This document shows, in pieces, positions 3 to 64,000 of a stretch of DNA of 64,000 nucleotides. The DNA is from Amoebophrya sp. A120. Its lineage: Eukaryota > Protista > Dinoflagellata. The stretch's first letter is position 1; every line of letters starts with the position of its first letter. A program made the translations under genes and the position numbers. Under the pieces are notes generated by a model, which was given only the letters and a program-made list of their open reading frames with translations, searched no databases and had not been told where the DNA came from. The stretch is from contig CAJINV010000013.1 of NCBI GenBank assembly GCA_905178155.1, positions 1,802,281 to 1,866,280 of the forward strand, in the 5' to 3' direction.

Positions 3-3000
3 ATGACCAGACTCGGGTCCTGCCTGTCCGTGCTGGATTGGGTGCACCTGGGCTCGTCCTTCAGCGTCCGCTCGTTCGCCCGAGTCGGGAGCAGCTTGTC
101 CGTATTCGGCTGCGTGTTGATGTCGAGCTCCTTGTCGCTGCTCGACTGCGCACACTTGGGCTCGACGTTCTCCGTCCGGAACTTCGCGCGGTTCGGGTCG
201 ACCTTGTCGACTTACGGTGTAGGCAGGCTCGGATCCAGCATGTCATTGCTGGATTTGCTGCATCTCGGATCTTCCGTTTCGGTGCGGGCTGCGTCCCGAT
301 TGGGCTCCAGCTGCAGCGTGTATGGCATCAGCCTGTTCGGCAGCAGCGTGAGCTTGCTGGACTTCATGTCCATGGGCTCCGCGCTGTCCCTGCGGTCGTT
401 CGCGAGGCTCGGATCCAGTCTGTCGGTGTTCGGCGTGACCAAGATGGGTTCGCTGCTGTCCTGCCTGGACTTCGTCACCTTCGGCAGTTCCTGCTCGATC
501 CGCATGTTCAGCCGACTGGGAAGTTCCGCTTCAGTTTACGGCCTTGCAAGACTGGGCTCGGCGTTGTCGCTGCTCGACACGGTCTCGATCGGCAGCTCCT
601 TGTCCGTCCGCACCTTCGCCCGGATGGGGTCCGCTGCCAGCGTGTACGGAATGGTCCGGTTCGGAAGTTCAATGTCTTTGCTGGACTGCTTCTGCATCGG
701 ATCCACCATGTCCATGCGCAGCTACGCGCGCCTGGGGTCTTCGCTTTCCGTGTACGGAATCAGTAGACTCGGGTCCTGCGTTTCCATTCTGGACTACGTG
801 AACATCGGGTCCGCTTTTTCGATCCGCGCGTTCAGCCGGTTCGGCTCCAGCTTCAGCCTGTTCGGCATTGGCAGACTCGGATCCTCCATGTCTGTGCTGG
901 ACATGCTGTCGCTCGGCAGTTCCATGTCCACCCGCGGTTTCGCGAGATTAGGGTCCAGCCTCTCCGTCTACGGACAAGTCAGGTGCGGATCGGCGTTGAG
1001 CGTCTTGGACATGACTTACTTGCGTTCGTCCTTGTCCTTGCGTTCTCTCGCGCGGTTCGGCTCCAGCTGCAGTCTCTTCGGCGTCTGCAGAATCGGGTCC
1101 TGCCTGTCCATGCTCGACCAGGTGACTTTTGGTTCCAGCTTGAGTCTCCGCAGCATCGGCCGCATGGGAAGCAGCGTTTCCGTGTACGGAATCTCGCGGT
1201 TCGGATCCAGTTGCAGCATTCTTGACGCGGTCAGCCTCGGCTCCGCGCTCAGCTGCCGGTCATTCGCGCGCTGCGGCTCGAGTTTGTCCGTCTTCGGGAT
1301 GGTCAGGTTCGGAAGTAGTTTGAGCGTGCTCGACACCATCAGCTTCAGCAGCGCGTTCAGCATGCGAGGGTTTGCACGACTGGGATCTTCTTTGTCCGTG
1401 TTCGGCTGCGCGAGAATCGGCTCTTCTCTCTCCGGCTTGGACTGTGTCTCCCTCGGCAGCTCGCTGTCGATCCGCAGCTTCTCGCGGTTGGGTAGCAGCT
1501 TCTCCGTGTACGGTGTGGCGAAGGTCGGGTCGTGCCTGTCGTTGCTTGACGGTGCGTCGATCGGCTCGAGCTTCTCCATCCGGTCGTTCGCAAGACTCGG
1601 AAGCAGCTTGTCGATCTTCGGATTGGTGAACATGGCGAGCTCGCTGTCTTTGCTGGATCTCGCTTCCCTCGGTAGCTCGATCTCCTGCCGCAGTATCGCG
1701 CGGTTCGGATCCGGCCTTTCGCTGTACGGCACGACCAGATTGGGGTCCGCGATCTCGCTGGTTGACTTCGCGAACCTGGGCAGCTCCTTCTCCTGCCGCT
1801 CGTTCGCGCGGTTCGGAAGCACGATTTCGGTGTACGGCACGGTCAGACTCGGGTCGGCTTTGTCCGTTCTCGACTACGTGCTGTGCGGTTCCAGTTTCAG
1901 CGTCCGGTCCTTCAGCCGCTTGGGATCCTCTCTTTCCGTCTTCGGCTGCGGCAGACTTGGAAGCTCCTTGTCCCTGCTCGACATGTTGACGCTCGGTTCC
2001 GGGGTCTCTCTCCGCAACTTCGCGCGCATGGGAAGTTCTTTGTCCGTGTTCGGGCTGTTCCAGTGCGGATCTAGCGTTTCGCTGCTGGACTTCCTGCAGG
2101 TCGGCTCGTCCCTCTCCGTTCGCGCGTTCCTGCGCATGGGCAGCACGCTGTCCGTGTACGGAATGAGCCGGCTGGGGTCACGGATGTCGATCCTGGATGG
2201 GTGCATGATCGGGTCCAGCTTCTCGATCCGAACCTTATCCCGACTCGGGTCCGCGATGTCTGTGTACGGAATCGGCCGGATTGGCTCCAGCCTCTCCGTG
2301 CTCGACTGCAGCATGATTGGCAGCAACGTTTCGACACGCAGCTTCGCGCGGTTCGGATCCAGTTTAAGTGTGTACGGATTGTCCCGGTTCGGATCCTCGA
2401 TGTCGATCTTGGACAACCTGAACCTCGGCTCCTCCGTCTCCATGCGGAATATGTGTCGACTGGGCTCGGCGTTCTCGGTGTACGGCAACGTACGCATGGG
2501 TTCCCTGCTCTCGATCCTGGACTACGGGCACATGGGATCGTCCGTTTCCGTGCGCGGTTTCTGCCGCCTCGGATCGTCGCTGTCGATCTTCGGCGTGGCG
2601 CGAATGGGAAGCAGCTTGTCGATTTTGGATCAGGTGAAGATCGGCAGCATGCTCTCCTGCAGAAGCTACAGCCGGTTCGGCAGCAGTCTGTCCTGCTACG
2701 GCATGATGCGACTCGGGTCCGGTGTCTCCATGCTGGACATGCTGCACCTCGGGTCCAGCTTCTCGATTCGGTCCCTCGGCCGCCTCGGCTCCAGCTTCAG
2801 TGTGTACGGTACGCTCCGCTTCGGGTCCGCGCTGTCCATGCTGGACTGCGTGAACCTCGGATCCAGCTTGTCCGTCCGCAGCCTGGCGCGGCTGGGGTCT
2901 AGTTTGTCGACGTTCGGAATTGCGCGATTGGGCTCGGCTCTGTCGGTGTTGGATTTCATCACCTTCGGTTCCACCCTCAGCTGCCGCTCGATGGGCCGAC

Positions 3001-6000: not shown

Positions 6001-9000
6001 TCTCCATTCGGAACTTCGCACGATTGGGTTCGAGTTTATCCGTGTTTGGCTGTTGCAGACTCGCATCCTGCTTGTCCATCCTCGACTGCGCGACGCTGGG
6101 GTCTGGCCTGTCCGTGCGGGCCTGGACGAGGTTCGGCTCCTCGATGAGTGTGTACGGCATGCTGCGGTTTAGCTCGCAGATGTCCGTGCTGGACATGCTC
6201 ACGATCGGCTCCTCCTTCTCCGTCCGCAACTTTGTCCGACTGGCGTCTGGGTTGTCCGTGATGGGGAGAACCCGACTCGGCTCGAACTTGTCGGTGTTGG
6301 ACCAGATCACGGTGGGATCGGCCTTGTCCGTGCGCGGCTTCGCCCGGTTCGGCAGCTCTTGCTCCCTGTACGGGTGCGCCAGACTCGGCAGCACGATCTC
6401 CATCTTGGACTTCGTCACGGTCGGGTCGTCGATGTCGCTGCGGCACTTCGCGAGACTGGGATCGTCCTTCTCCGTCTACGGCGTGGCACAACTCGGCAGC
6501 TGCCTGTCGTTGCTGGATAACATCCAGCTCGGCTCCTCGTGCAGCGTCCGCTCGTTTGCGCGGTTCGGGTCCACCTGCAGTGTGTACGGCGTGAGCAGAC
6601 TCGGCTCTCTGCTGTCCGTGCTCGACATTGCGCACATCGGCAGCTCCATCAGCGTCCGCGGCATGGCCCGGCTCGGCAGCTCGCTGTCCGTGTTCGGCCT
6701 GTGCCGGCTCGGATCCGCGTTGTCCATGCTGGACGGCTGTCAGCTCGGCTCCGCGCTGTCGGTCCGCAGCATGGCGCGGTACGGAAGCAGTTTGAGTGTC
6801 TACGGGTGTGTCAGACTCGGGAGCTCTATGTCCGTGTTGGATGTCACTGATTTGGGATCCACGTTGTCGCTGCGGTCCTTCGCACGACTGGGATCCAGCA
6901 CGTCGATCTTCGGCATGTGCCGCATGGGAAGCCGTTTGTCCATCCTGGACACGCTCATGCTCGGTTCGACCTACAGCCTCCGCGGCTTCTGCCGGATGGG
7001 CAGCAGTCTGTCGATCTTCGGCATGGCCAGATTGGGCTCCGCGCTCTCGATCCTCGATTTCGTCAGCATGGGCTCGTCGATCTCCGTGCGGTCGTTCGCG
7101 CGACTCGGATCCAGCTTGTCCGTCTGCGGCATCATGAAGATGGGATCCTCCTTGTCCGTCTTAGATGTGATTCAGCTTGGCTCCGCCATGTCCGTCCGCA
7201 GCTTCGCGCGCCTCGGGTCGAGTTTGAGTCTCTTCGGAATCAGCACGCTGGGCTCCGCGATGTCGGTGCTGGACTTCTTGACGCTCGGATCGTCCGCGTC
7301 GCTCCGCTCCTTCGTGCGCATGGGATCTTCCTTCAGCGTGTACGGAACGGTCCGGTTCGGTTCCGCACTGTCTTTATTGGACTTCACGCACTTTGGCTCT
7401 AGCACCTCGGTGCGCGGATTCTGCCGACTGGGGAGCTCCCTGTCCGTCTTCGGACTGGCGCGGATCGGATCCTCCTTGTCGATCCTGGACAACTGCCAGA
7501 TCGGGTCCAACATCTCGATTCGCGGGTTCTCCCGGCTGGGAAGCAGCTACAGCGTCTACGGCATGACAACTTTGGGGTCCAGTTTATCTGTCCTCGACTG
7601 CGTGCATCTAGGATCTGCTCTCTCAGTCCGCCACTACGCCCGTTTAGGTTCGTGCCTGTCCGTGATGAGCCGCAACTTGCTCGGATCCAGCTTCTCCGTG
7701 CTCGACACGCTGCAGATGGGATCCAGCTTCTCGGTCCGCTCGTTCGCGCGCCTGGGAAGTTCCCTCTCCGTGTTCGGCGTGACGCGCCTGGGCTCGACGT
7801 TGTCCGTGCTCGACCGCATGTCCATCGGCACCAGCCTGTCGATCCGCGGGTTCGTTAGGCTCGGCAGCGCTATGTCGATCATCGCCGCGGCGCGGTTCAG
7901 CAGTTGCATGAGTGTCAAGGACTACGTCCATCTCGGTTCGAGTTTGTCGGTGCGCTCCTTCACGCGGCTCGGCTCCGCCTTCAGTCTGTACGGGCTGTCG
8001 AAGGTCGGATCCAACATGTCGCTGCTGGACTTCATGCACATCGGTAGCGCGATCTCGGTCCGGTCTCACGCGCGGTTTGGAAGCGCACAGTCGATCTACG
8101 GCTTCGCCCGACTCGGCTCCACGATCTCCGTTCTGGACTTCGTGTCCGTCGGATCTGCGGTGTCGCTGCGCTCCTTCGCGCGACTCGGATCTGCGCTTAG
8201 CGTCTACGGAACTTCCAGGTTGGGCTCAACCTTGTCGGTTCTGGACTTCGTCGCGATCGGTTCCAGCTTCAGCCTGCGCGGCTTCAGCCGCATGGGATCC
8301 TCTTTCAGCATCTTCAGCCGCGCGGCCGCCGGTTCGGTGTCCGTCCTGGACTTCTTCGAGCTGGGCAGCACGATGAGCATCCGGTCGACGACTTGCTGCG
8401 GCAGCATGCTGTCTCTGTTCAGCCAGGTGCGGTTCGGATCGACGTTGTCCGTTTGCCAGGCCATGTTCATGGGATCCGCCTTGTCCTGCCGTGGCGCGAG
8501 CAGACTTGGTTCCAACTTCAGCATCTTCAGCTACACAAACCTCGGCAGCAACCTGTCCGTGCTGAACTTTGCGATCGCGGGATCGACCTTGTCCCTCCGT
8601 GCGTTCGGGCGGTGCGGGAGTAATTTTTCCGTGATCAACCAGGTCACGTTCGGGTCCAGCTTGTCTGTCCTGGACTACGCCTGCCTCGGCAGCTGCGTGT
8701 CCATGCGGTCGATGGCTCGGTTGGGCAGCAGCTTCTCGATTTACGGCATGTTTCGCGCGGCGAGCAACTTCTCGGTGTTGCAGTTCGTGCAACTCGGATC
8801 GGCGTTGTCGATTCGGTCCTACAGCCGGCTCGGATCGACGCTCTCCGTCGCGGGCTACGTGAAGTTTGGCTCGACGGTTTCTTCCCAGGAGCAGACGAAC
8901 CTGACGTTGCTGTCCGTCCGCAGCTGGGTCCGCCTCGGCTCCGGCATGTCGATCTACGACTGCGTGCGATACGGTTCCAGCCTGTCGATCCTGAACTACA

Positions 9001-12000
9001 TGACGTGCGGGTCTAGTTTGTCGCTGCGCTGCTACGCTCGCGTTGGCTCGTCCGTCTCCATCTACGGCAAGTTCCGCATGGGCTCCATGATGAGCACGTT
9101 CGACACGATTTTGGCCGGCTCGTCCCTCTCCCTGCGCGGCTTCCAGCGGTACGGATCCGCTGTGAGCATCTTCAGCCAGGTGCGGATGGGAAGCAGCATG
9201 TCGATTTTGAACCACTTGGAACTCGGATCCAGTCTGTCCCTCCGCGCCCGCGCGCGGCTCGGCTCCGGCTGCAGCCTGTTCGGAAAGGTCCGGATGCGCG
9301 ACACCATGTCGATCCTGGACTTCTTCGCGGCGGGATCTTCGCTCTCGATCCGCGCGTCGACCCGAGTGGGATCGAGTCTGTCCCTGTTCAGCCAGGTCCG
9401 GCTCGGCTCCACCATGTCGCTGCTGGACCGGGTGCACATGGGATCCAGCTTGTCCATCCGCGGCGTGACGCGACTGGGCAGCGGATTCAGTATCTTCTCC
9501 GCGCAAAGACTCGCCTCGAGTATGTCGGTGTTGGACTCCGCGTACTTGGGCTCCACGTTATCCTTGCGTGGTATTTCGCGGTTCGGCTCGAATTTCTCGA
9601 TCTACAACCGCGTCGCTCTGGGCTCGAGCTTCTCTGCTCTGTCCCAAAGTCATCTAGGTAGTTCGTTGTCGATCCGCAGCTATGCCCGGTTCGGCTCGGC
9701 AATGTCTATCTTCGGACTCGCATCTGGTGGCAGTTGCTTGTCCGTGCTGGACTCGGCGAGTTTGGGGTCCGCGATCTCCCTGCGGTCCTTCTCGCGCATG
9801 GGTTCCAGCTTCTCCGTGTACGGCATGCAGCGGTTGGGCAGCAGTTTGTCTTGCCTGGACACGATCCTGCTCGGCAGCGCCTTGTCCGTCCGCGGCGCCA
9901 TCCGGCTGGGAAGCTCCATGTCGATCTTCAGTCAGATGAGGTTCGGATCCGGGCTCTCCTGCTTGGACTTCACGAACTTCGGCTCGGTTCTGTCCCTTCG
10001 CGCGACATTGCGCATGGGATCGGCGATGAGCATCTACGGAAAGATCCAGGCCGGGTCCAGTTTGTCCATTTTGGACACCACCTTGCTCGGGTCCAGCTGC
10101 AGTCTCCGGGCTTACGCTCGACTCGGGTCCGTCCTGTCGATCTACAACAGGGCTAAAGTCTCCGGCGCGTTCTCGGTGCTGAACTTCACGAACTTCGGGT
10201 CGACGCTGTCCCTGCGTTCCTACAGTTCGCTGGGCAGCAGTCTCTCCGTGTTCTGTAACATTCAGGGTGGCGCGGCGCTCTCCCTGCTCGCGAACGGGTC
10301 CTTCGGTTCGTCCGCCTCCCTGCGTGCGTTCGCGCGACTGGGCAGCAACGTGTCCGTCTTGGACTCCATCATGTTCGGAAGCAGCGTGTCCATGCGGAAC
10401 TTCTTCCGCGTCGGGTCCGCGATGAGCATCTTCAGCAAGCTGGGTTGCGGCTCGAATTTCAGCATCCTGGACAGCACGCACTTGGGTTCGAACCTGTCTC
10501 TCCGCGGCTACGCACGACTCGGATCTTCCTTCTCGGCGTTCACCTGCACGAGATTCGGCTCCAGCTGCTCGATCCTGGATTGCCTGGGCTTGGGATCCAC
10601 GTTCTCCATGCGCTGCACCGGGCGACTCGGTTCCTCGGCCTCCGTGTTCTCCGCTGTGAGACTTGGCTCGACGCTGTCCTGCTTGGACCAGACCATGATC
10701 GGATCCGGATTGTCGATTCGTGCGTTCCTGCGCCTCGGCTCCGCCTACTCCGTGTTCTCGCGAGTCCGCGGTGGCAGCAGTCTGTCTTTGCTGGACTGCG
10801 CGTTCTTCGGTAGTTCGCTCTCCATGCGCGCGCAGAACCGGCTCGGGTCCACGTTCTCCGTGTTCGGACAGGTCCGCGCGGGCTCTTGTTTGTCCATTCT
10901 GGATTACATGAGCCTCGCTTCGACGTTATCTCTCCGCGCGGCCGTCCGCGTTGGCTCCGGCGTGTCCATCTTCGGCTGCTCCAACATGGGATCGCGGTTC
11001 TCCGTGCTGGACTCCGTCGCGTTCGGAAGCAGCATGTCGCTGCGTTCGCACATGCGCGTCGGGTCTGGGCTGTCCGTGTTCGGCGCGATCCGAACGGCTT
11101 CCAGCCTGTCCGCGCTCGGCTACGGCATCTTCGGGTCGTCGTTGTCCATCCGCAACTACATGCGGGTCGGATCCGCCATGAGCTTGTTCAGCCAGGCCAG
11201 GATGGGCAGCTCCCTCTCCGTGCTGGACAAGATCGCGTTCGGGTCGAGTTTGTCGCTCCGACAGCTCGCAAGGTTCGGAAGTTCCCTTTCCGTGGTTGAA
11301 ACCGCACGGTTCGGATCGTCTCTGTCCGTCCTCGACTACTTCAGCATCGGGTCTTCGTTCTCGATGCGTGCGGCCGGCCGGTTCGGCTCCACTATGTCGG
11401 TGTTCGGCGTGGCGCGCGCCGGGGAGGCGGCTTCGCTACTGGACTTCTTCGCGATCGGGTCGACGCTCTCCTTGCGTTCGTACTGCCGCGTGGGTAGCGG
11501 GTTGTCGATCACCGGGTCGACGGACATGGGTGACAAGTTGTCCGTGCTCGACGCGATCAGCTTCGGGTCCTCCATGTCGCTGCGGTCCACCTTCCGGTGC
11601 GGCAGCAGCGCGAGCTTGCTGGACTTCGTCACGCTCGGGTCCGCGTTGTCCCTGCGTGGCGCGATCCGGTGCGGTAGCAGTCTGTCCATCCACAAAGGGA
11701 TTCGTATGGGTGCGTACATGAGTGTGATGGACGAAGCCTGCCTGGCTTCCGCCGTGTCCCTTCGTGGCTTCGCGCGGTTCGGCAGCAGCATCTCGATCTT
11801 CGACATGTTCGCGGCCGGCAGCTCCCTGTCGCTCCGCACGTACGGCCGGGTCGGCTCCGCGGTGTCCGCGTTCGGCTGCGTGCGGTGCGGCAGCACGATG
11901 AGTGTGTTGGACGCCACGGCATTCGGGTCCAGTCTCTCTTGTCGTACCTACGTGCGGCTCGGGTCCTCCATGAGCGTGATGTGCGGCGCCAGACTCGGAT

Positions 12001-15000
12001 CCAGCATCTCCGTGCTCGACTACTTCAGCGTCGGGTCCGCCATGTCGCTGCGTGCGTACCAGCGGATCGGCAGCTCCTGCAGTCTGTTCGGCGGTGCGAA
12101 GGGCGGTTGCCACTTGTCGATCCTCAGTCAGGTCTCGCTTGGTAGCAGCCTCTCCCTCCGTGGTTTGGCGCGCGCGGGCAGCTGCGTCTCGGTGCTGGAT
12201 TATTTGAAGATGGGATCATCCTTGTCTATCCGTGCGTTCGCGCGCTTCGGGGACGGGGTCTCCACCTTCGACTTCCTGCACGTCGGCAGCTCCATGTCGA
12301 TGCGCAGCAGCACCCGATTCGGGTCGTCCGTGTCCATCCGCGCGTTCGCGCGGTTTGGCTCCGGGTTCTCGATCTACAGCAAGGTGCAGATGGGATCATC
12401 CTTGTCGACGCTGGACTTCCTGTCCATGGGTTCCGCCTTCTCCGTGCGCGCAATGGGACGCTGCGGCTCGGCTCTGTCCTCGATGGACTTCGCGACGCTG
12501 GGTTCCTGCCTGAGTCTGCGTTGCAAGGCGCGGGCCGGTAGCAGTCTCTCCGTGTTCGCGCAGGCCCGCATGGGATCCAGCTTCTCGGTGCTCGGGCACA
12601 CCTGCTTCGGCTCCAGCTTGTCGCTCCGGAAGTTCTGCCGCGGCGGATCTGCCTGCTCGATCTTCAGCCAACTACGATTCGGCAGCAGTTCCTCCGTCCT
12701 GAACTACTTCCACCTCGGGTCCTCCCTCTCCATCCGGCAATTCGTCCGAATTGGCGAGGGACAGGTGTCCGCGTACGGCTCCGGTCGGGTTGGCATGCAG
12801 ATGTCCGTGTTAGACTTCGCAACGTTCGGGTCCAACCTGTCGATGCGCAGCTCGGCGAGATTCGGGTCCGCCATGAGCGTGTTCGATTTCATGCAGCTGG
12901 GCTCTTGCCTCTCCATCCGGAAGACGGCGAAGTTCGGCTCCGGCTTCTCGATCTTCAGCCGCATGCAGATGGGCTCCTGCTGCTCGATCTTGGATGCGGT
13001 AAGCTTCGGCTCTTCCCTCTCCGTCCGCGCGATCGCGCGCTTCGGAGGGCAGACGTCGGTGCTGGATAGCGTGTACCTGGGATCAACCTTGTCTGTCCGC
13101 GGCGTGGTCAGATTCGGCAGCAATTTCTCGATCTTCGCAATGACGAGGTCCGGGTCGTGCGCTTCTCTGCTGGACTTCATGAGCATGGGGTCCGCGATGT
13201 CGTTGCGCGGCGTCGGCCGGTGCGGCTCGTTCGTTTCGATTCTCGGCAGCATGCGCATGTCGGGCAACATGTCGATTTTGGATTCCGTCAGCTTCGGGTC
13301 TTCCCTTTCCGTCCGTCGCAACGCCAGACTGGGTGGACCGCTGTCGATGCACGACTGCACATGCTTCGGGTCTGCGCTCTCGCTCCGTGCGGTAACCAGA
13401 CTCGGTTCCGCACTGTCGATCTTCAGCCAGGCAAGGATGGGTTCCGCGACCTCGATCATGAACTACCTCGCGATGGGTTCGCAGATGTCGCTCCGCGCGG
13501 CCGGCCGACTCGGCTCCGGCTACTCGGTGTTCGGCAGGACGAGTTCCGGCGGGCAGTTCTCGATCTTGGACAAGGTGGACTTCGGTTCGACCTTCTCGAT
13601 CCGTGCGTACGGGCGGTTCGGCGCAAACATGTCCGTGTTCGATTTCGTGCATTTGAGTAGCTCACTGTCCCTCCGCGGTGTGGCGCGCTACGGATCGAAC
13701 CTCTCCGTGTTCGACCGGTCCCAATTCGGCGGCTGTTTATCCACCTTGGATGCCGTGAACCTCGGTTCCGTGCTGTCCGTGCGTGCGTTCGTGAAGATGG
13801 GGTCGACTCTGTCCATCTTCGACTTCACGAACTTTGGCTCCGTCGTGTCCGTCCGTAGCTTCATCCGGTGCGGATCCACCTTCAGTATCTACCACCGCGC
13901 ACGACTCGGGTCGGCGCTGTCCACCTTGGACTTCTTCAGCTGCGGTAGTTGCTTGTCGATCCGTGGCGTCACCCGGGCGGGATCGGCGCTGTCCGTGTTC
14001 GGAACCATGAGGATCGGATCCTGCTTGTCGGTACTGGACGTGAGTCACTTGGGTTCGGCGTTGTCCCTGCGTGGGTACGCGCGGCTCGGCTCCACGGTGT
14101 CCGTGATGAACCAGATCCGCTTCGGCTCGACTCTTTCGATCTTGAACGCGAACACGCTGGGCTCCGTTTTGTCCCTGCGCGCGTACGTGCGGTTCGGAAG
14201 CGCATTGTCAGTCTACGAGCGATGCACGGTTTCTTCCAGTTTGTCGGTGTTGGACTTCCTGACTCTCGGGTCGTCGATTTCCACGCGCAACCTGATCCGA
14301 TTCGGCTCGAACATGTCCGTTTTCAGCCAGGTGGCCTTCGGCTCCAGTCTGTCCGTGCTTGATTACGCGAACTTCGGTTCCTCGATCTCTGTCCGCTCGC
14401 TGGTCAGAATCGGTTCCGCGCTGTCCGTGTTCGTGACGGAAACATCAGATTCCCTGAATCTGGGTAAGCTCTCCATCCTGGCGACGACCAACATCGGTTC
14501 CTGCTTGTCGCTGCGTGGCTTCGCGCGGTTCGGGTCGAGTTTCTCGATCTTCCAACGCGTGGCTTTGGGCTCGACCTGCAGCTCTTTAGATTTCGCGCAC
14601 TTCGGCAGCACGATCAGTATCCGCTCGTTCCTGCGAGCCGGTTCCACTGTGTCCGTGTTCAGCAAGACCACGTACGGATCGACGGTCTCCGTCTTGAACT
14701 TTAGCGCCTACGGTTCCTGCATGTCGCTGCGCGGCTTCGCGCGAGTCGGCTCCGCCTTCTCGATCTTCAGCAAGGCGGCCATGGGCAGCAACTTGTCCGT
14801 GTTGGACTTCACGCACTTGGGATCCACGACGTCTTTGCGGTCCATCGTCCGCCTCGGCTCGTCCTTCTCGATCGCCGGCGCGACCAACCGAGTCTTCCTG
14901 CACACGCAAATGTCCGTGCTGGACTTCGTGAACCTCGGGTCCAGCATCTCCGTCCGCAGCTGCGTGCGGTTCGGTTCGACCTTCTCGATCTACCAGCGGT

Positions 15001-18000
15001 TGCTGCACGGCTCGACCTTGTCCGTGCTGAACTGCGCGTGCCTCGGGAGCAGCCTCTCGCTCCGGTCCGCGATGAGACTGGGGTCCAGCTACTCGATCTT
15101 CGCGAAGGTGCAGATGGGAAGCGGCATGTCCGTGTTGGACTTCTTCGCCCTGGGTTCGAACTTGTCGCTGCGTGCCGCCGCGACCTTCGGTTCGTCCTTC
15201 TCCGTGTTCAGTCGCGGCATGATCGGGAGCAGCTGCAGCTGCTTGAACTTCAGCAACCTGGGATCGACGCTTTCCGTTCGCGAGTACTGCCGCATCGGAT
15301 CCTCGGTGTCTGTCTTCCGGAAAACCTTGATCGGCGGCATGTGCTCGCTGCTGAACTACCTGCACTTGGGGTCCAGCCTGTCCGCGCGCAACATCGTGCA
15401 GTTCGGCTCCCGCGCGTCGGTCTTCGACTACTGCCACCTGGGCTCGACACTGTCTTTGCGTGCGGTGATGAACCTGGGCAGCTGCGCGTCTCTCCGGGCC
15501 TTCATCCGCCAGGGGTCCGCGCTGTCCGTGTTCAACCGGGTGGCGTTCGGCAGCTGTCTGTCCGTGTTGAACTTCTTCCACCTGGGGTCAAGTTTGAGCC
15601 TTCGGAACTACATCCGCGCGGGCAGTAGCTGCTCCATTCTGGACACGGTCCGTTTCGGGTCGACGTTGTCCGTGCTGGATCACCTGATGCTCGGATCGAC
15701 GCTTTCCCTGCGTGAGTACGTGCGGTGCGGCTCCACGCTGTCTGCGTTCAGCCGCTTCACGGCGGGATCGTGCCTGTCGATCCTGAACTTCACTGGTCTC
15801 GGCTCGACACTGTCGCTCCGCGGCTACATCCGACTCGGATCTTCCGTCTCCGTGTTCGAAGACGTGAAGCTGGCGCAGACCTGCTCAGTCTTGGATTACC
15901 TGCAGTGCGGTTCCTCTGTCTCTTTGCGGTCCTATTTACGGGTGGGTTCCGGATTGAGCGTGTTCGGTCGGACCAATTTTGGCTCCTGTTTGTCCGTGTT
16001 GGACGCAGCGCACTTAGGCTCCAGCCTGTCCCTCCGGTCCTACATCCGGCTCGGATCGACCTTGTCGGTGTTCAGCCGCACGGAGTTCGGACGGGAGTTA
16101 TCCGTGTTGACGCAGGTGCACTTAGGTTCGAGTTTGTCGCTGAGATCCTTCGGCAGCTGCGGCTCGAATTTGTCGGTCCTGGATTTCACGAATTTGGGTT
16201 CCAGCCTGTCTATCCGCCAGTACTTCCGGATCGGCAGTTCGATGAGCTTGTACGGCGGGCACGTTCGGGTTGGCAGCACGCTGTCAGTCCTGGACATGCT
16301 CCAGCTCGGTAGCGCCTTGTCTATGCGGTCCTTCGTTCGGCTCGGCTCTACTCTTTCCGTGAAAGCGGAGGGCGTGATGGGCTCGACGTTGTCGGTGCGC
16401 AGCTATTTGAGACTCGGCTCCTCCATGTCGGTGTTCTCCACGGCGCGGTGCGGTGCGGATGTGTCGTTATTAGACCAGATCGAGTTTGGTTCGACGCTTT
16501 CACTCCGGTCCTTCGTCAAGTTCGGCAAGACCTGCTCAGTGTTGGACGCGACGCAACTCGGCAGCACCCTGTCTCTCCGCCAGTACATCCGGCTCGGAAG
16601 CACTCTGTCGGTGTCCGCGGGCACGCGCTGCGGATCCTTCATGTCCGTGATCGACTTTTTGACGCTGGGCTCCAGCTTCAGCTGCCGCGAGTACTTCCGG
16701 GTGGGCTCCGCGCTCTCCCTGTTCTCGTGCCTGAGGGTCGGCTCGTGCATCTCGGTACTCGATTCCGTGAAGTTCGGCTCTGCGCTGTCCCTCCGCCAGT
16801 ACGTGCGGTTCGGCAGCGGTCTGTCCGTGCTGGAAACGACCCGCATCGGGCAGGCGTTCAGCGTTTTGGATTGCACCAACTTCGGTTCCACGCTTTCCAT
16901 CCGCGCCAAGGTGAACATGGGCAAGAACCTTTCGGTCCTGGATTTCGCGGAACTCGGATCGGCGGTTTCGGTGCGCGCCATCATCCGCTTCGGATCGACG
17001 CTCTCCGTGTTCAGCCAGGCGCGGTTCGGCAGCAGCCTGTCAGTTTTAGATTTTCTACAGCTCGGCTCGACGATTTCTGTCCGGAATGTTTCTCGCTTAG
17101 GTTCCGCGATGTCGCTGCTGTCCTGCATCCGCGCGGGATCCACGATTTCTATGTTGGACGCCATGATGGTGGGCTCCGCGTGCAGTCTGCGCAACTTCTG
17201 CCGCGTCGGCTCCGCGATGTCTATCTTCGGCAACGTGAAGCTCGGATCCAGCATGAGCTTGCTCGACGTGATCGCGCTCGGATCCTCTTGCAGTATTCGT
17301 GCCTACACCAGGCTCGGATCCAGCCTGTCCGTGAAGACCACCACGCGGTTCGGCTCGGAACTTTCAGTTCTCGACTACCTGGCGCTTGGAAGCAGCATCT
17401 CCACGCGCTCCTTCGGTCGCTACGGAGCGACGATCTCCGTCTTCGACTACTGTCAGATGGGATCGAGCTTGTCCCTCCGGGCGACGGTGCGCTTCGGATC
17501 CACGATGAGCATCTTCGCGCGGGCGGATCTCGGGCAGACACTGTCCGCTCTCGGCTGTGTCTCCCTCGGATCCTCGCTCTCCATGCGCAGCTACGCGCGA
17601 CTGGGGGCGAACCTGTCCGTGCTCGACTACACGTTCTTCGGTTCCGCGATCTCCGTCCGGAACTTCGTGCGGTTCGGCTCCAGCTTGTCGACCCTGCAGC
17701 GGACCAATTTGGGGCAGCAGTTCTCCGTCCTGGACTGCGTGTCCCTCGGTTCCTCCTTCAGTGTCCGCTCGGTGGTGAGTTTCGGCAGCAATTTGTCCGT
17801 GTTCGACATGATGTCGGCGGGAAGCAGCGTGTCCGTCCGCACGATCAGCCGGTTCGGGTCCAGTTTCTCTGTCTTCAGCAAGTGCACGCTCGGGTCTGCG
17901 CTGTCCGTGTTGGACTTCGCGAACCTGGCGTCCAGCGTGTCCGTGCGCACCACGGCGAAGTTCGGCGACAGTATCTCCGTGCTGAACTACGTGGCCTTCG

Positions 18001-21000
18001 GGTCCTCGATCTCGCTGCGCGACTTCGTCCGGTTCGGCAGCGGCGTGTCCGTCATGAACCAGATGAAGTGCGGTGGCATGCTGTCGATCCTGGATTGTTT
18101 GGAACTCGGTAGCAGCTTGTCGACCCGGTCCTTCGGCAGACTCGGATCCTCCGCGTCGGTAATGGACTTCCTGCAGCTCGGCTCCACCTGCTCCCTCCGC
18201 GCGACCGCCCGGTTGGGATCGGTGTTGTCCACCTTTGGGCAGTTCCAGCTCGGAAAGCAGATGTCGGTGTTGGATCAGGTTTTGCTCGGATCCAGCTTGT
18301 CTGTCCGGTCCGTCGCTCGGTTCGGCAGCAATGTCTCCTTGCTGGATCAGCTCTGCCTCGGATCCTCCCTCTCCGTGCGCTGCGCCATGCGGACCGGTAG
18401 CCACTTGTCCATCCTCGGACAGGTGAAGATCGCGAACAATTTGTCCGTGTTGGACGTCGTGAAGCTCGGGTCCTCGCTCTCAATTCGGGCGACGTCAAAC
18501 TTCGGTGGCAGGATCTCCACGTTGGACTTCTGCGCATTGGGCTCCTCGATCAGCTTACGTGCGTACATGCGGTCTGGCTCCTCTTTGAGTCTGTTCAGCC
18601 AGGTGCGGTGCGGATCGACTTTGTCGCTCTTGCAGCAGGCGCACTTCGGAAGCAGCTTGTCTCTGCGCACCTACGCGCGCATGGGATCCAGCATGAGCGT
18701 CTTCAGCCAGGCGAAGTTCGGCTCGCGGATGAGCGTGTTGGACTGCCTGAACATCGGTAGCGCGATGTCTCTGCGGCATTACCTGCGGTTCGGATCGGCC
18801 ATGAGCATCATGAGCCAGGGACGGTTAGGATCAAGCGCGAGTTTGCTGGACTTCTTCAGCATGGGCTCTTCCATGTCGCTCCGCCACTACATCCGCGGCG
18901 GGAGTGCGGTCAGCCTGTTCTCGACGGCGCGGTTGGGTAGCAACTTGTCTGTGCTGGATCAGCTGCACTTGGGCTCCAGCCTGAGTCTCCGGTCTATGCT
19001 GCGGTTGGGTTCCAGCCTGTCCGTGCTCGGAGACACCAGACTGTCCCACAAGCTGTCGTTGCTGGATGGCGTCACCCTCGGTTCCTCCTTATCCGTCCGT
19101 TCGCGTGCGGAGTTCGGGTCCCGCGTGTCCATCATCGACTTTTTGCAGGCGGGAAGCAGTTTGTCGATCCGGAACTACAGCAGGATTGGATCCAGTTTGT
19201 CCGTTCTTGAGAAGGTGAGACTCGGCATGAGCATGTCCATGATCGACACGCTGCATCTCGGATCCTCTTTCTCCGTGCGTTCCACCATGCGACTCGGCTC
19301 CGCCTTGTCCGTGCTGGACAGCTGCGCGTGCGGCTCGGCCCTGTCTCTCCGCGAGTACATCCGGGTAGGATCCGCGCTCTCCGTTTTCAGCAAGACGCAG
19401 TTCGGCGCTAGCTGCAGCGTTTTGGATTTGACCGACTTCGGTTCGTCCATGTCCCTGCGCGCGTACCTGCGGGTCGGTAGCACTCTGTCCGTGTTCAACC
19501 GCAGCACGTGCGGCAGCAGCTTCTCCGTCTTGGACTTCCTGCAACTGGGCAGCAGCATGAGCGTCAGGAACTACGTGCGCGTTGGATCTGCTTTCAGCAT
19601 CTTGTCCAAAGCGTCGCTCGGCAGCAACTTGTCCGTTCTCGACGTTTTCGAACTGGGCTCGACGATGAGCCTCCGGGCGGTCACCCGACTGGGATCCAGC
19701 TTGTCCGTCCTTCTGACCACGAAGTGCGGTGCGGCTCTGTCCACCCTGGACCAGGTTTCCCTCGGATCCAGTTTGTCGATCCGGTCCACCGCCAGGTTCG
19801 GGTCCGCGCTGTCCACTCTCACGTTCGTCCAGCTTGGCTCCAGCCTCTCCCTGCGCAGCTACATCCGCGTCGGCTCCGCCTGCTCGGTGTTGACCTGCGC
19901 GCGGCTGGGAAGCTCGGCGAGTCTGCTCGACTACTTCTGCATGGGAAGTTCCGTTTCCGTGCGGACGTTCGTCCGGCTCGGGTCCTCCATGAGCGTCTTC
20001 AGCAAGACGTCGCTCGGATCCAGCTTGTCCGTGCTGGATTGCTTCCAGCTGGGAAGTTCGCTTTCCATCCGGAACTACATGCGCATCGGCAGCTCGTTGT
20101 CCGTGAAGGAGAAGACGCGACTCGGCGAGGAACTGTCCGTGCTGGACTGCGTCAACCTCGGCTCGACTCTGTCCGTGCGTAACGTCGCCCGGTTCGGGTC
20201 CCGACTCTCGCTGCTCGACACGCTCGCGCTGGGCTCGAGCATGTCGCTCCGGTCGCTCGTCCGGTTCGGCAGCAACATCTCGGTGTTGGAGTATGTGAAC
20301 TGCGCGTCCGCGGTCTCCATCCGCGGCTTGAGCCGGCTCGGGTCTAGCCTGTCGGTTCTGAAGACCGCACGGTTCGGCATGGATCTGTCGGTTTTGCAGC
20401 AAGTTGAACTCGGCAGTTCCTTCAGCGTTCGCGGGTTGTCCAGGTTGGGCAGCAACCTGTCCGTGTTGTACTTTGCGGACATGGGTTCCTCCGTTTCGGT
20501 GCGCAACGCGATCAGGATCGGCAGCTCCTGCAGCCTGTTCTCCACCGCGCGGTTCGGTTCCACTTGCAGCGTTTTGGACTTCTGCGGCCTCGGCAGCTCC
20601 ATGTCGCTGCGCCAGTACACGCGCATCGGCTCGTCTTGCAGCGTGCGGTGCAACACCAGACTCGGGGATGCGGTCTCGATTGTCGGTCGGTGCCACCTGG
20701 GTTCCTCCCTCTCTTTGCGCGCCGTCGCTCGCCTCGGATCTGCGCTTTCCGTTTTGGAATTCGTCTGCCTGGGCAGCTCGGTCTCCCTGCGCAACCAGGT
20801 CCGCATCGGGTCCGCCATGTCGGTGTTCAGCTGTGTGCGGTTCGGCAGCAACTTGAGTGTCTTGGATATGGCGAACATCGGCTCGTCCGTCTCCATCCGC
20901 TCGCGCGTCCGCATCGGCCAGCACATGTCCGTCTTCGGCACCATGCGTCTGGGCAGCAGCATTTCCGTCCTGAATTTCGTCATGATGGGATCTGCTTGCA

Positions 21001-60000: not shown

Positions 60001-63000
60001 GCAGCTTCTCGCTGCGCGGCCGGGCCCAGCTCGGCTCGCGTATGAGCATTCTGAACTGCGTTAGCCTCGGCTCGGCGCTCTCCATCCGCCAGTACAGCCG
60101 CCTCGGCAGCGGACTGTCGGTCAAGGGTTCGGGCAACATGAGTGGCAAGCTCTCCGCTCTGCAGTGCGCAAACCTCGGGTCTGCGCTGTCCGTCCGCGCT
60201 GCGACCAGACTCGGTAGTCGCGCGTCCGTGCTCGACATGCTGATGCTTGGGTCCACGCTCTCCGTCCGCGGCGTGACCAGACTCGGGTCCGCGGTCTCCG
60301 CCGCCGGCAGCGGTCGCGTCGGCCAGAGCTTCTCCACCTTGCAGTGGTCGGCCGTCGGCTCCGCGATTTCCGTCCGCGGTACCAGCCGACTGGGAAGTAG
60401 ACTGTCGGTCTTCGACGTGTTTAACCTGGGCTCCACACTCTCCGTCCGCGCCTTCATCCGGTGCGGCAGCACGGTGAGTGTGGCGGGCCGCACAGCCATT
60501 GGCTCGTGCCTGCAGCTTTCCGTGGTCAACGCGATCCACATCGGGTCCACACTGTCGCTCCGCGCGAACATGAAGTTCGGCAGCGCCATGTCGGTTCTCG
60601 GCGTCACCAACGCCAGCAACAAGCTCAGCGTGCTGAACTGCGGCAACCTCGGCAGCGCGCTCTCCATCCGGGGAGTAAGCCGCTGCGGTTCGCGCGTTTC
60701 CGTGTTCGACTGCCTGCGACTCGGCAGCACCGTCAGCATTCGGTCCTTCACCCGGTGTGGTTCCTGCCTCTCTGTGCACGGTGCGGTGGCGATCTCCAGT
60801 CTGAACAAAGCGTCCATCGTGCAGTGGGCGCACCTCGGCTCGTCGCTCTCCGTCCGCGGGGTCGCGCGCCTCGGCAGCCGAGCAAGTGTGCTGGATTGCC
60901 TGAACCTCGGCTCATCGCTGTCCGTCCGCACCATGGCCCGCCTGGGCTCGAACGTGAGTTGCGTCAGCAATACGAAGGTCGGCGGGAAACTGTCTGTGCT
61001 GAACTTCTCGCACCTGGCCAGCTCCTGCTCGGTCCGCGCCATGGCGAGACTCGGGTCCCGCGCGTCCGTGCTGGACATGCTGAACCTCGGTTCCACCGTG
61101 TCCCTCCGGTCCTTCATCCGACTGGGTAGCAGTCTGTCGCTGGCCGGCGACACCGAGTTCGGCAGCCGTGTCAGTTTGTTCGAGCAGATCCACCTCGGGT
61201 CGTCTCTGTCCATCCGCGCGTCTATCCGGTGCGGCAGCCGGGCGTCCGTGCTTGACTGCTTCCAGATCGGCAGTGCCATCAGTGTCCGCTCCACGTCCAG
61301 AATCGGCAGCAGGGCCTCCGTGTTGAACTTCTTCCAGCTCGGGTCCGCTCTGTCCGTCCGGGCGATGATTAGGACCGGCAGTGGTATTTCCGTCCACAAC
61401 ACGCCCGTCGCCGGTCACAAACTCTCCCTGCTCAACGAAGTGCAGCTCGGGTCCACGCTCTCCGTCCGGTCCTTCATCCGCGCGGGCAGCAGCATCTCCG
61501 TGTTGGACGCCATCATGTGCTCGTCGAGCATCAGTCTCCGCGCGTCCGGCCGGTTCGGCAGCTACGCCTCGATCATGACGTTCTGCCAGGTCGGCAGCTC
61601 GCTGTCCGTCCGCAGCTTCTGTCAGATCGGTAGCTCGATGTCGGCGATTGGCTCCGGCCGCGTCGGCGGCAACTGCTCAATCTTGTCCTTCGTCAGGCTT
61701 GGCAGCTCGCTGTCCACCCGGTCCACCGCCAGGTTTGGCAGCAGGATGTCCGTCATGGATTGCTTGGCGCTGGGCAGCAGCGTGTCCCTGCGCGGGTTCA
61801 GCCGCGTCGGCCTTGGCTGCAGCGTGAAGGGCCTGCTCGCCTGCGGGTCCGCGCACGCCACCAGCGTGATCGGCTTCTTCAACCTCGCAAGTTCCCTGTC
61901 CGTCCGCGGTGTCACGAGGACCGGATCCAGGTGCAGCGTGCTGGACTTCTTGACGCTCGGCAGCTCCGTTTCCATCCGCAACTTCGCCCGCATCGGCTCG
62001 GGCGTCAGCGTCGGCGGCAAGGGCACCTTCCAGGGATCCTTTTCCTGCATCAGCCACGCGCAACTCGGCTCGGCGTTGTCCATCCGCGCGACCGCGCGGG
62101 TCGGCAGCCGGATGTCCGTGCTTGACATGCTCGGTCTGGGGTCCACCGTGTCCACGCGAACCATGGCTCGCTTCGGCTCCGGCCTGTCGGTCGTTAACGC
62201 CGCGAAGATTGGCGGCAAATTGAGCGTTCTGAACTTCACCGGTTGCGGTTCCGCGTTGTCCGTCCGAGGGTATGCGAAGTTCGGCAGCAAGGCATCCGTT
62301 GTGGACTTCGTGGCGCTCGGTAGCAGCATCTCGGTTCGCAGCTTCATGCGGGCGGGATCCAGCGTTTCCGCGTTCGGATCCACGCACGTCGCGCAAGGCA
62401 GAATGAGCGTGCAGAAGTTGTGCAACATCGGATCTGCACTTTCCGTCCGCGGTGCCATGCGGTTGGGCAGCCGTGCGTCCGTTTTGGATACGCTCGCGCT
62501 CGGCTCGTCCATCTCGGTCCGAGCCTTCAGTCGGTGCGGCAGCAGCGTGTCTGCCGTCGGCCTCGTCCGGGTCGGCAGCCTGCACATGGCGTCGGTGATT
62601 GGCGTCACGCACCTCGGGTCCAGCCTGTCCGTCCGCGGGGTCACCAGGTTCGGCTCCAAGATATCCGTGTTCGACTTCCTGCAGCTCGGCTCGTCCGTCT
62701 CGGTCCGACAGTTCGCGCGGTTCGCCAGCAGCGTGTCTGTCGCCGGACCCAGAGTGCGCGCCGCGGGCATGGCGTCCGTGCTCGACTTCTCGGTGCTGTC
62801 GAGTAGCATTTCCGTCCGGTCGTTCGGTCGACTGGGCGGGAAAGTCTCCGTCCTGGACATGGTTAGCCTCGGCTCCTCGCTCTCGGTGCGCACTTACTGC
62901 AGGATTGGGTCCAGCTGCAGCGTCATGTCCCACGTCCCGGGTGTGGGTGGAAGACTGTCTGTGCTCGAGCAGGCGACGCTGGGCTCCATGCTGTCCGTCC

Positions 63001-63998: not shown

Positions 63999-64000
63999 TG

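Follow-up and report, generated by a model that had tools for sequence, protein, structure and literature searches.

A 79,750-nt exon of Amoebophrya sp. A120 belongs to a giant gene best read as an extreme eukaryotic variant of a phage-type trimeric fibre

What is encoded by a reading frame that crosses 64,000 nucleotides (nt) of eukaryotic DNA without a stop codon? The question is raised by positions 1,802,281 to 1,866,280 of contig CAJINV010000013.1 of the dinoflagellate Amoebophrya sp. A120 (GenBank assembly GCA_905178155.1; 115,520,608 bp in 401 records), hereafter the window (64,000 nt; C13:1802281-1866280; window coordinate = contig coordinate - 1802280). A preliminary description, made from the letters of the window alone, had reported forward frame +3 to be stop-free and its translation to weigh at least 2.2 MDa; translation of positions 3 to 63998 gave 0 stops in 21,332 codons and a mass of 2.22 MDa, while the remaining five frames hold 127-631 stops each, with longest open runs of 179-1,118 codons. 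The open reading frame (ORF) had also been described as leaving the window at both ends with at least 21,332 codons, which proved an understatement: with 60 kb of flank examined on each side, frame +3 remains free of stops over 79,779 nt (26,593 codons; contig 1788264 to 1868042). Here we show that the window is the middle of a genuine eukaryotic protein-coding gene, which is best read, from its recognisable domains, as an extreme eukaryotic variant of a phage-type trimeric fibre with a putative self-cleaving C-terminal chaperone.

The open run contains one giant exon of 79,750 nt with GT..AG borders (C13:1788272-1868021; window coordinates -14008 to 65741), which overruns the window at both ends and encloses it wholly. 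Its product comprises 26,583 amino acids (aa), 2.77 MDa, with an isoelectric point of about 11. Removal of the intron at the 5' border restores an Arg codon and the repeat register, and the 3' border reads ..TTC ATG CAT/GTACGT at contig 1868021/2. Repeat-bearing sequence extends on both sides of the exon, from about contig 1787200 to 1873600, and on its 3' side the exon is followed by about 12 short ones, with AT-rich introns of roughly 100 to 230 nt in between. The whole gene spans at least 87.8 kb in about 15 exons. Its precursor, estimated as the sum of approximate exon lengths from a putative start and with predicted later small exons, would have about 28,700 (roughly 29,000) residues, about 3 MDa and about 2,400 twelve-residue units; all searches were done exon by exon. 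The parts of the gene, in order along the contig, are as follows.

Contig 1786845-1786913, + strand: hydrophobic signal-like segment, FFGKFLFAFFLFFQLFFLQADA, with an A-x-A-like end
Contig 1786914-1788046, + strand: N-terminal head and degenerate repeats, outside the window
Contig 1788047-1788271, + strand: upstream intron, GT..AG
Window 3 to 63998, + strand: inner part of the giant exon, open in frame +3 over 21,332 codons and holding about 1,780 units of twelve residues
Contig 1868022-1868182, + strand: first downstream intron, 161 nt, absent from RNA
Contig 1868183-1873655, + strand: about 11 short repeat exons, the last ending in the neck
Contig 1873752-1874009, + strand: exon with the start of the chaperone domain, reading ..GTLHGTWSADNAVTSSDKRRKRDIAPL...
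Contig 1873839-1873856, + strand: Ser/Lys dyad SDKRRK, in the context ..AVTS-S-D-K-R-R-K-RDIAPL
Contig 1874087-1874680, + strand: terminal exon, where the Peptidase_S74 core and the stop codon lie, reading ..LQELRPVSYKYKRASESKYSRYGFIAQEIEEVLPNMV.. followed by a helix-prone tail

To evaluate whether the open frame reflects a protein, the number of stops expected over the 21,332 window codons was modelled from base composition, from codon-position composition and by neutral decay of the 108-nt consensus unit in 200 runs. The two composition models predict 495 and 351 stops, respectively, and decay of the consensus to the observed 33% divergence gives 228 (minimum 199 in the 200 runs), against an observed 0. 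The G+C content at codon positions 1, 2 and 3 is 48%, 54% and 85%, and among copies of the 36-residue super-repeat, which share 56% DNA identity, conservation peaks at codon position 2 (71%) and is lowest at position 3 (44%). Furthermore, invariant Ser columns of the super-repeat are encoded by both codon families (column 6, 55 TCN and 22 AGY; column 30, 51 and 26, respectively); since a switch between TCN and AGY needs two base changes, the amino acid has been kept and not the DNA. The product of the giant exon is under purifying selection as a protein. These measurements bear directly on the alternative of a transcribed but untranslated or degenerating array, either a satellite-like one whose unit happens to leave a frame open, or a gene that died recently. 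A highly repetitive, low-complexity sequence with no peptide evidence, for which two RNA runs gave no reads, would suit such an array; however, all neutral simulations yield at least 199 stops where none is found, the codon-position asymmetry and the dual Ser codon families indicate selection on protein, and copies only 56% identical in DNA denote an old array that is still open. Precise splicing that preserves the frame and the repeat register, intact terminal domains and the same architecture retained in four paralogs likewise argue against it, and we consider this alternative very improbable.

The window sequence is present in RNA-type runs. Run X3 holds one 39,575-nt transcript contig, which was aligned against contig 1864281-1870280 only (window 62001-64000 and 4 kb beyond); its letters 29336-33076 match the final 3,741 nt of the giant exon in one colinear block with 0 mismatches, and it skips exactly three downstream GT..AG introns of 161, 174 and 145 nt. 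The transcript contig's own coordinates imply that it reaches about 29 kb further into the window:

Window 32666 to 64000, + strand: part of the window implied under the X3 transcript contig, its start estimated from the coordinates of that contig

The first splice joint was also found in an estuary metatranscriptome, X6, with 153 matching letters on the shorter side and 0 mismatches. Together, the X3 and X6 joints show that the + strand is transcribed and spliced, both in culture-derived data and in nature, so that transcripts are not confined to the minus strand, a possibility that the preliminary description had raised. The X3 contig also speaks to whether an 80-kb exon exists as such or was produced by collapse or expansion of repeats during assembly. 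The paralogous locus on contig C2 holds four N runs (4,376 N in total), which implies that repeat loci of this genome are difficult to assemble; against an artefact at the present locus, however, the 184-kb stretch of C13 is without N, the repeat copies (56% identity; best internal DNA matches 64-68%) are too diverged to confuse an assembler, the independent 39.6-kb RNA contig is mismatch-free over the part compared, and DNA runs, possibly the source data themselves, hold 100% of the words sampled from window 20001-26000. An assembly artefact is likewise very improbable.

A clue to the class of the protein lies at its C-terminus. The last exon matches the Pfam family Peptidase_S74 (PF13884) with 37.4 bits (cut-off 22; E 3e-9) over profile positions 17-57, the first profile positions falling in the preceding exon, and in a six-frame scan of the genome the domain scores 39.2 bits. 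An alignment of 17 relatives revealed invariant G..W, S-D-x-R-x-K and GFxAQE motifs, all of which are found in the C13 gene (the last as GFIAQE), and a profile made from it matched, in the PDB, the long-tail-fibre tip 6f45 (E 1e-8), the tail fibre 8jov (E 5e-5) and 7dc3, the self-cleaving chaperone domain of MYRF (E 0.01). The S74 domain acts only as a trimer, held by its C-terminal helices, and chaperones an upstream triple beta-helix (PMC8326128); once the trimer has formed it cleaves itself by means of a Ser(i)/Lys(i+5) dyad, S911/K916 in endoNF and S587/K592 in MYRF (PMC8326128). The SDKRRK of the C13 gene satisfies this i, i+5 spacing. In an AlphaFold2 (AF2) model of the relative P0013, residues 365-417 form a long terminal helix with a predicted local distance difference test score (pLDDT) of 86-96, and the counterpart stretch of C13 reads ..LTLGIQSLDSRVWQLDEKLTTIDIKVEENYEKLTDRMKTIETMIRKVL. 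The presence of the S74 domain would place the product in a class of fibres folded by a domain that then leaves by self-cleavage. The preliminary description had seen a single short-repeat architecture with no recognisable globular domain, which holds inside the window, where repeats alone occur, and fails outside it, where the signal-like segment, the head and the S74 domain lie; its further suggestion of an undescribed class of giant structural protein gives way to membership of a known class of self-cleaving-chaperone fibres, and the novelty is limited again by 1,508 representative proteins, dinoflagellate and Symbiodinium sequences included, that match the repeat.

At the opposite end, a non-repeat head (NYGDITLLGPVDIDP...KDGLIKW) directly follows the hydrophobic segment and is succeeded by degenerate 12-mers (LGDKLSVTDVVH and LGEEVSVAQSAY) that merge gradually into the canonical unit. 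The G+C content at third codon positions rises abruptly at the hydrophobic segment, from about 0.5 to about 0.8, which indicates that confident coding sequence starts there. The paralog on C2 begins in the same layout, with a hydrophobic segment and then FVQVSKNGQISLLGPINIDP... Extension into the flanks, which the preliminary description had proposed for finding the ends of the protein, thus supplied the stop codon, the terminal domains and a signal-like segment.

Between these ends the sequence is very repetitive. Ser makes up 22% of the window translation, Leu 13%, Gly 11%, Val 9% and Arg 8%, Pro and Trp being nearly absent, and 1,012 of the 1,429 successive 'GS' spacings are exactly 12 residues and a further 239 exactly 24. 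The 12-residue unit has a turn at G5-S6 and apolar residues at positions 4, 8 and 10. Three different 12-mers, xAR-LGSSLSV-LD, FVx-LGSSLSV-RS and FAR-LGSSLSV-(F/Y)G, compose the 36-residue super-repeat, and its residues S6, S9, D12, S21, R23, R27, S30 and S33 do not vary in any of the 77 in-register copies. Unit repeats reach to about 100 residues before the Ser/Lys site, directly upstream of the chaperone domain. Two zones can be distinguished within the window:

Window 3 to 8318, + strand: 77 consecutive 36-residue super-repeats (2,772 residues) in perfect register
Window 25000 to 63998, + strand: register-shifted zone (borders approximate; residues about 8,400-21,332), with unit and super-repeat unchanged and insertions in single units

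About 110 register shifts occur in the giant exon (55 of +2 and 30 of +1 residues), and their rate rises toward the C-terminus from 0-3 to 5-9 per 1,000 residues. The insertions are often 110 residues apart, that is, three super-repeats plus 2, and could be regular stutters or hinges of the shaft. Tandem Repeats Finder detects almost nothing in the window, since a DNA identity of only 56% between copies hides the repeat from it. An R-x-x-S motif, a consensus of the basophilic-kinase type, recurs more than 1,000 times, formed by the Arg of unit position 3 with the invariant Ser of position 6. The net charge of the chain is about +1,600, and modification of the Ser faces by phosphorylation or O-glycosylation could adjust the charge or packing of the fibre.

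How might such a shaft fold? Probably, the product is secreted and forms a homotrimeric fibre of beta structure, about 1 µm in length, whose plan is that of a phage tail fibre enlarged about 20 times. A trimer is favoured because the sole recognisable domain is one that acts as a trimer and folds trimeric shafts, because the three non-equivalent 12-mers of each super-repeat fit a chain that visits the three faces of a triangular helix, and because a single chain turning every 36 residues would place each invariant Asp and Arg on top of its own counterpart. If this fold holds, with one 0.48-nm layer of triple beta-helix per unit, the exon alone corresponds to about 1.06 µm and the whole shaft to about 1.1 µm. 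In this model, the protein would enter the secretory pathway. Following the precedent of phage tail fibres, endosialidase tailspikes and MYRF, the C-terminal chaperone domains of three chains would assemble into a trimer by way of their terminal helices and fix the register in which the chains align. The beta-structured shaft would then zip from the C-terminus toward the N-terminus, after which cleavage by the Ser/Lys dyad, on the N-terminal side of the Ser of SDKRRK, would release the chaperone. What remains would be a homotrimeric fibre that is kinetically stable, very basic and rich in Ser.

The principal competitor keeps the same protein and lets one chain form the shaft alone, as a beta-solenoid (bactofilin or left-handed hexapeptide type) in which each turn takes 18 or 36 residues; the 36-residue turn would give a rod of about 0.35 µm, or the solenoid could self-polymerise into a filament, and S74 would be a cleavable or oligomerising cap only. 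Three 1,000-aa segments of the window were scanned with Pfam profiles: Hexapep (PF00132; cut-off 27 bits) gave 27.7 bits in one, with no single stretch passing, 21.2 bits in another and no match in the third; Bactofilin (PF04519; threshold 27.9 bits) gave no match in any, and apart from the borderline Hexapep no Pfam family rose above threshold in these 3,000 residues. The near-threshold Hexapep score favours the solenoid, as do the Bactofilin matches in two 12-periodic relatives, P0016 (49.6 bits) and P0028 (93.6 bits), the annotation of relatives as 'bactofilin', 'LpxA' and 'LpxD', the fact that LpxA/LpxD are the sole, insignificant PDB sequence matches of the repeat profile (E 0.07-1.6), and the arithmetic of 12 = 2 x 6. 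Against it, no window segment reaches the Bactofilin threshold, and Asp12, Arg23 and Arg27 would each stack on themselves every 0.48 nm, which should be electrostatically unfavourable. AF2 usually builds confident solenoids for true single-chain beta-helices, and here its monomer built none. Moreover, all characterised S74 domains function as trimers and chaperone shafts that are themselves trimeric (PMC8326128). We rate the single-chain solenoid as rather unlikely.

Several observations weigh against the secreted trimeric fibre. The AF2 monomer of six super-repeats (27-row self-alignment) is all-beta, with 10-residue strands and two-residue turns at G-S, at a pLDDT of 57.6, and that of P0013 (repeat and S74) reaches 44.6, its terminal helix alone being confident; both are thus low-confidence models. 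A Foldseek search of the repeat model against the PDB returned nothing at E<=0.001, the insignificant matches being beta-helix enzymes only, and PDB sequence searches with the repeat profile, P0001 and P0043 yielded no analogue of the shaft. The weak Hexapep score and the Bactofilin matches of the relatives would fit a single-chain beta-helix equally well, and trimerisation, cleavage and the triple beta-helix are all predicted from the C-terminal domain. At the N-terminus, no in-frame ATG lies within about 60 codons upstream of the hydrophobic segment, the nearest being about 60 codons up, and the segment may be a signal peptide, a signal anchor or the sign of a missed 5' exon. Expression support consists of RNA, and the raw RNA-seq runs X10 and X11, which carry the same organism label, gave no reads, a result that we rate as no test. 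The cellular role proposed below, in trichocysts or attachment, is a guess.

The putative fibre can be compared with known systems. Like phage tail fibres and tailspikes (K1F endoNF, T5 pb1 and the S16/T4-type tip 6f45), the C13 protein has a small non-repeat N-terminal module, a long and probably beta-rich repeat shaft and, after the shaft, a C-terminal S74 domain that carries the Ser(i)/Lys(i+5) dyad and ends in a helix-prone tail. The C13 gene differs in being a cellular eukaryotic gene with introns and a signal-like segment, in a shaft about 20 times longer than the L-shaped tail fibre pb1 of T5 (1,396 aa), in a 12-residue LGSSLSV repeat with a 36-residue super-period that lacks a solved counterpart, and in that no receptor-binding or enzymatic domain was found before its chaperone. 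MYRF/MrfA (myelin regulatory factor), whose structure 7dc3 the profile of the relatives matches, is likewise a eukaryotic host gene with a phage-type self-cleaving chaperone and a beta-helical stalk for trimerisation and self-cleavage; in contrast, MYRF is a transcription factor bound to a membrane, its stalk is short, and it carries a DNA-binding domain as well as a transmembrane segment that follows the chaperone, whereas in C13 the chaperone domain is C-terminal, the 'stalk' makes up nearly all of the 29,000 residues and there is no DNA-binding domain. The C-terminal triple-stranded beta-helix of T4 gp5 (8-residue VxGxxxxx) has a comparably short period, small turn residue and alternating hydrophobics, and served as our model for one 0.48-nm strand layer per repeat per chain; the C13 period is 12 and not 8, its units are of three non-equivalent kinds, its layers are about 100 times more numerous and its fold is a prediction. 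In size, at about 3 MDa per chain, the protein ranks with titin (about 35,000 aa), PKZILLA-1 (about 45,000 aa) and giant bacterial adhesins, but these are strings of globular domains (immunoglobulin/fibronectin type III, polyketide synthase modules and Big/cadherin-like domains, respectively), whereas C13 is one uninterrupted repeat of short period that ends in a phage-type folding cap. The trichocyst matrix proteins of ciliates offer a functional analogy only, as a possible extrusive thread, and show no sequence relation.

The gene is one of a small family. The six-frame scan of the genome found exactly four Peptidase_S74 domains, each of them just 3' of one giant repeat locus that cross-matches the repeat DNA of the window:

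C2:13002179, + strand: S74 domain
C13:1874126, + strand: S74 domain of the gene described here
C3:1231091, - strand: S74 domain
C11:3083062, - strand: S74 domain
C2 12.90-13.00 Mb, C3 1.237-1.290 Mb and C11 3.09-3.14 Mb: repeat regions cross-matching the window repeat DNA
C3, about 1231091-1290200, - strand: paralog of about 60 kb, located by cross-match and S74
C11, about 3083062-3143600, - strand: paralog of about 60 kb, located by cross-match and S74

The paralog on C2, longer still than the C13 gene (C2:12896822-13002538; about 105 kb, four N gaps, longest open run 8,193 codons) shares the N-terminal module and an intact S74 end with the C13 gene. Beyond this genome, a 1,080-residue piece of the repeat matched 1,508 representative proteins, 59 of them at E<=1e-30, and the long relatives share the 12-, 24- and 36-residue periodicity; among 154 relatives fetched, the GFIAQE motif of S74 follows the repeat in 29. 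They derive from EukProt 'Dinoflagellata sp. MGD' (P0013), from many marine metatranscriptome fragments and from Symbiodinium (S. microadriaticum, S. necroappetens and Symbiodinium sp. Y106; all 'hypothetical', for example OLP93762.1 and CAE7702468.1), and the family is, as judged from these matches, dinoflagellate-wide. The AT-rich relatives P0016, P0028, P0043 and P0076 (2,000 to 4,300 residues) carry an N/T-rich unit (xSTLSVxNxVxx) and a full-length S74, and two of the three scanned matched the Bactofilin profile (P0016 and P0028, with the scores given above), with no single stretch passing; the sources of these AT-rich proteins label them bactofilin/gpV or LpxD. None of the relatives approaches the C13 gene in size: the uncharacterised 12-periodic proteins (1,000-4,300 aa; phmmer E 1e-173 to 1e-20), alike in periodicity and often in a C-terminal S74, are 7 to 30 times shorter and many are fragments, and the Symbiodinium relatives are Pro-rich and degenerate, without S74 in the fragments examined. 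The window's own protein is absent from the representative protein library, and a word-indexed protein search with 10,000 window residues gave no match in the length band of 5,500-17,500 aa.

The viral sequences inspected share the cap and not the repeat. A scan of IMG/VR with the C-terminal profile found 256 viral loci, including giant-virus metagenome-assembled genomes; in the ten inspected, the S74 domain was the only common element and the 12-residue repeat was absent, and an IMG/VR scan with P0016 gave no match. Likewise, all 78 loci from a metagenome scan with the last exon belonged to other kinds of S74 fibre (for example with NTANG-type repeats). The ESM Atlas neighbours are viral 'hypothetical proteins', which we treat as no more than a lead toward a possible viral origin of the shaft.

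What might a dinoflagellate do with such a protein? Our guess, the least certain part of this reading, is an extracellular or extrusome filament, for example a trichocyst thread or a host-attachment fibre of the infective dinospore, which is reasonable given a dinoflagellate-wide family, a secretory look and a fibre of about a micrometre. Sporonts of Amoebophrya A120 make trichocysts that are thought to attach the dinospore to its host (PMC9478091), and dinoflagellates lack homologues of the extrusome proteins known from other protists (PMC5375639). Since the protein make-up of dinoflagellate extrusomes is unknown (PMC5375639) and the family appears dinoflagellate-wide, the gene is a candidate for trichocyst or host-attachment filaments, one that can be tested by antibody or proteomics in an ecologically important parasite of bloom-forming algae. 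A bolder proposal, that the four-gene family forms the long-sought structural thread of dinoflagellate extrusomes (the trichocysts of Amoebophrya sporonts), a micrometre-long triple beta-helix like that of phage tail fibres, whose folding domain is otherwise known from phage fibres and MYRF and which is conserved from Syndiniales to Symbiodinium, is doubtful on present evidence; if it were true, a borrowed viral fibre-folding module would be the basis of a eukaryotic ballistic or adhesive organelle. MYRF is the only cellular eukaryotic protein described with an S74 domain in the literature consulted, and the phage-type self-cleaving chaperone domain would gain a second, quite different cellular job. 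Each chain has about 29,000 residues and a trimer would reach about 9 MDa, which would put the product among the largest eukaryotic proteins. It poses a folding question, namely how three chains, each encoded by 80 kb, keep register over about 2,400 layers. To our knowledge, its shaft would be the longest continuous short-period beta repeat.

The locus also bears on annotation. Long ORFs on the minus strand of the window (for example frame -3, open for 1,118 codons) lie opposite the coding frame and are a by-product of the A-poor coding strand; as the preliminary description had noted, the ORF caller listed only these shadows, the coding exon being on the + strand, and callers that discard open-ended ORFs will report shadows only and keep such genes hidden. 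Its expectation that standard annotation would miss the gene is doubtful, since the longest annotated exons of Amoebophrya are 79,744 bp in strain A25 and 44,016 bp in A120 (PMC7789003), so that at least one pipeline has called an exon of such size. The A25 value (PMC7789003, Table 1) is within 6 bp of the 79,750-nt exon described here; either the repeat number is strikingly conserved between species, or the published table or strain assignment differs. Our literature search found no publication discussing the giant gene. Fragments of the repeat family (P0012, P0018, P0044, P0028 and P0009) have been named LpxA/LpxD acyltransferase or bactofilin/gpV by automatic pipelines, and the LpxA, LpxD and bactofilin names are probably systematic mis-annotations arising from the hexapeptide-like periodicity. 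About 4 kb before the fibre gene, a neighbouring ORF on the + strand (C13:1782002-1782658) encodes a Cys-rich protein of 219 aa (..CDGCGEEILVYKK..CYCGFWRFGH..).

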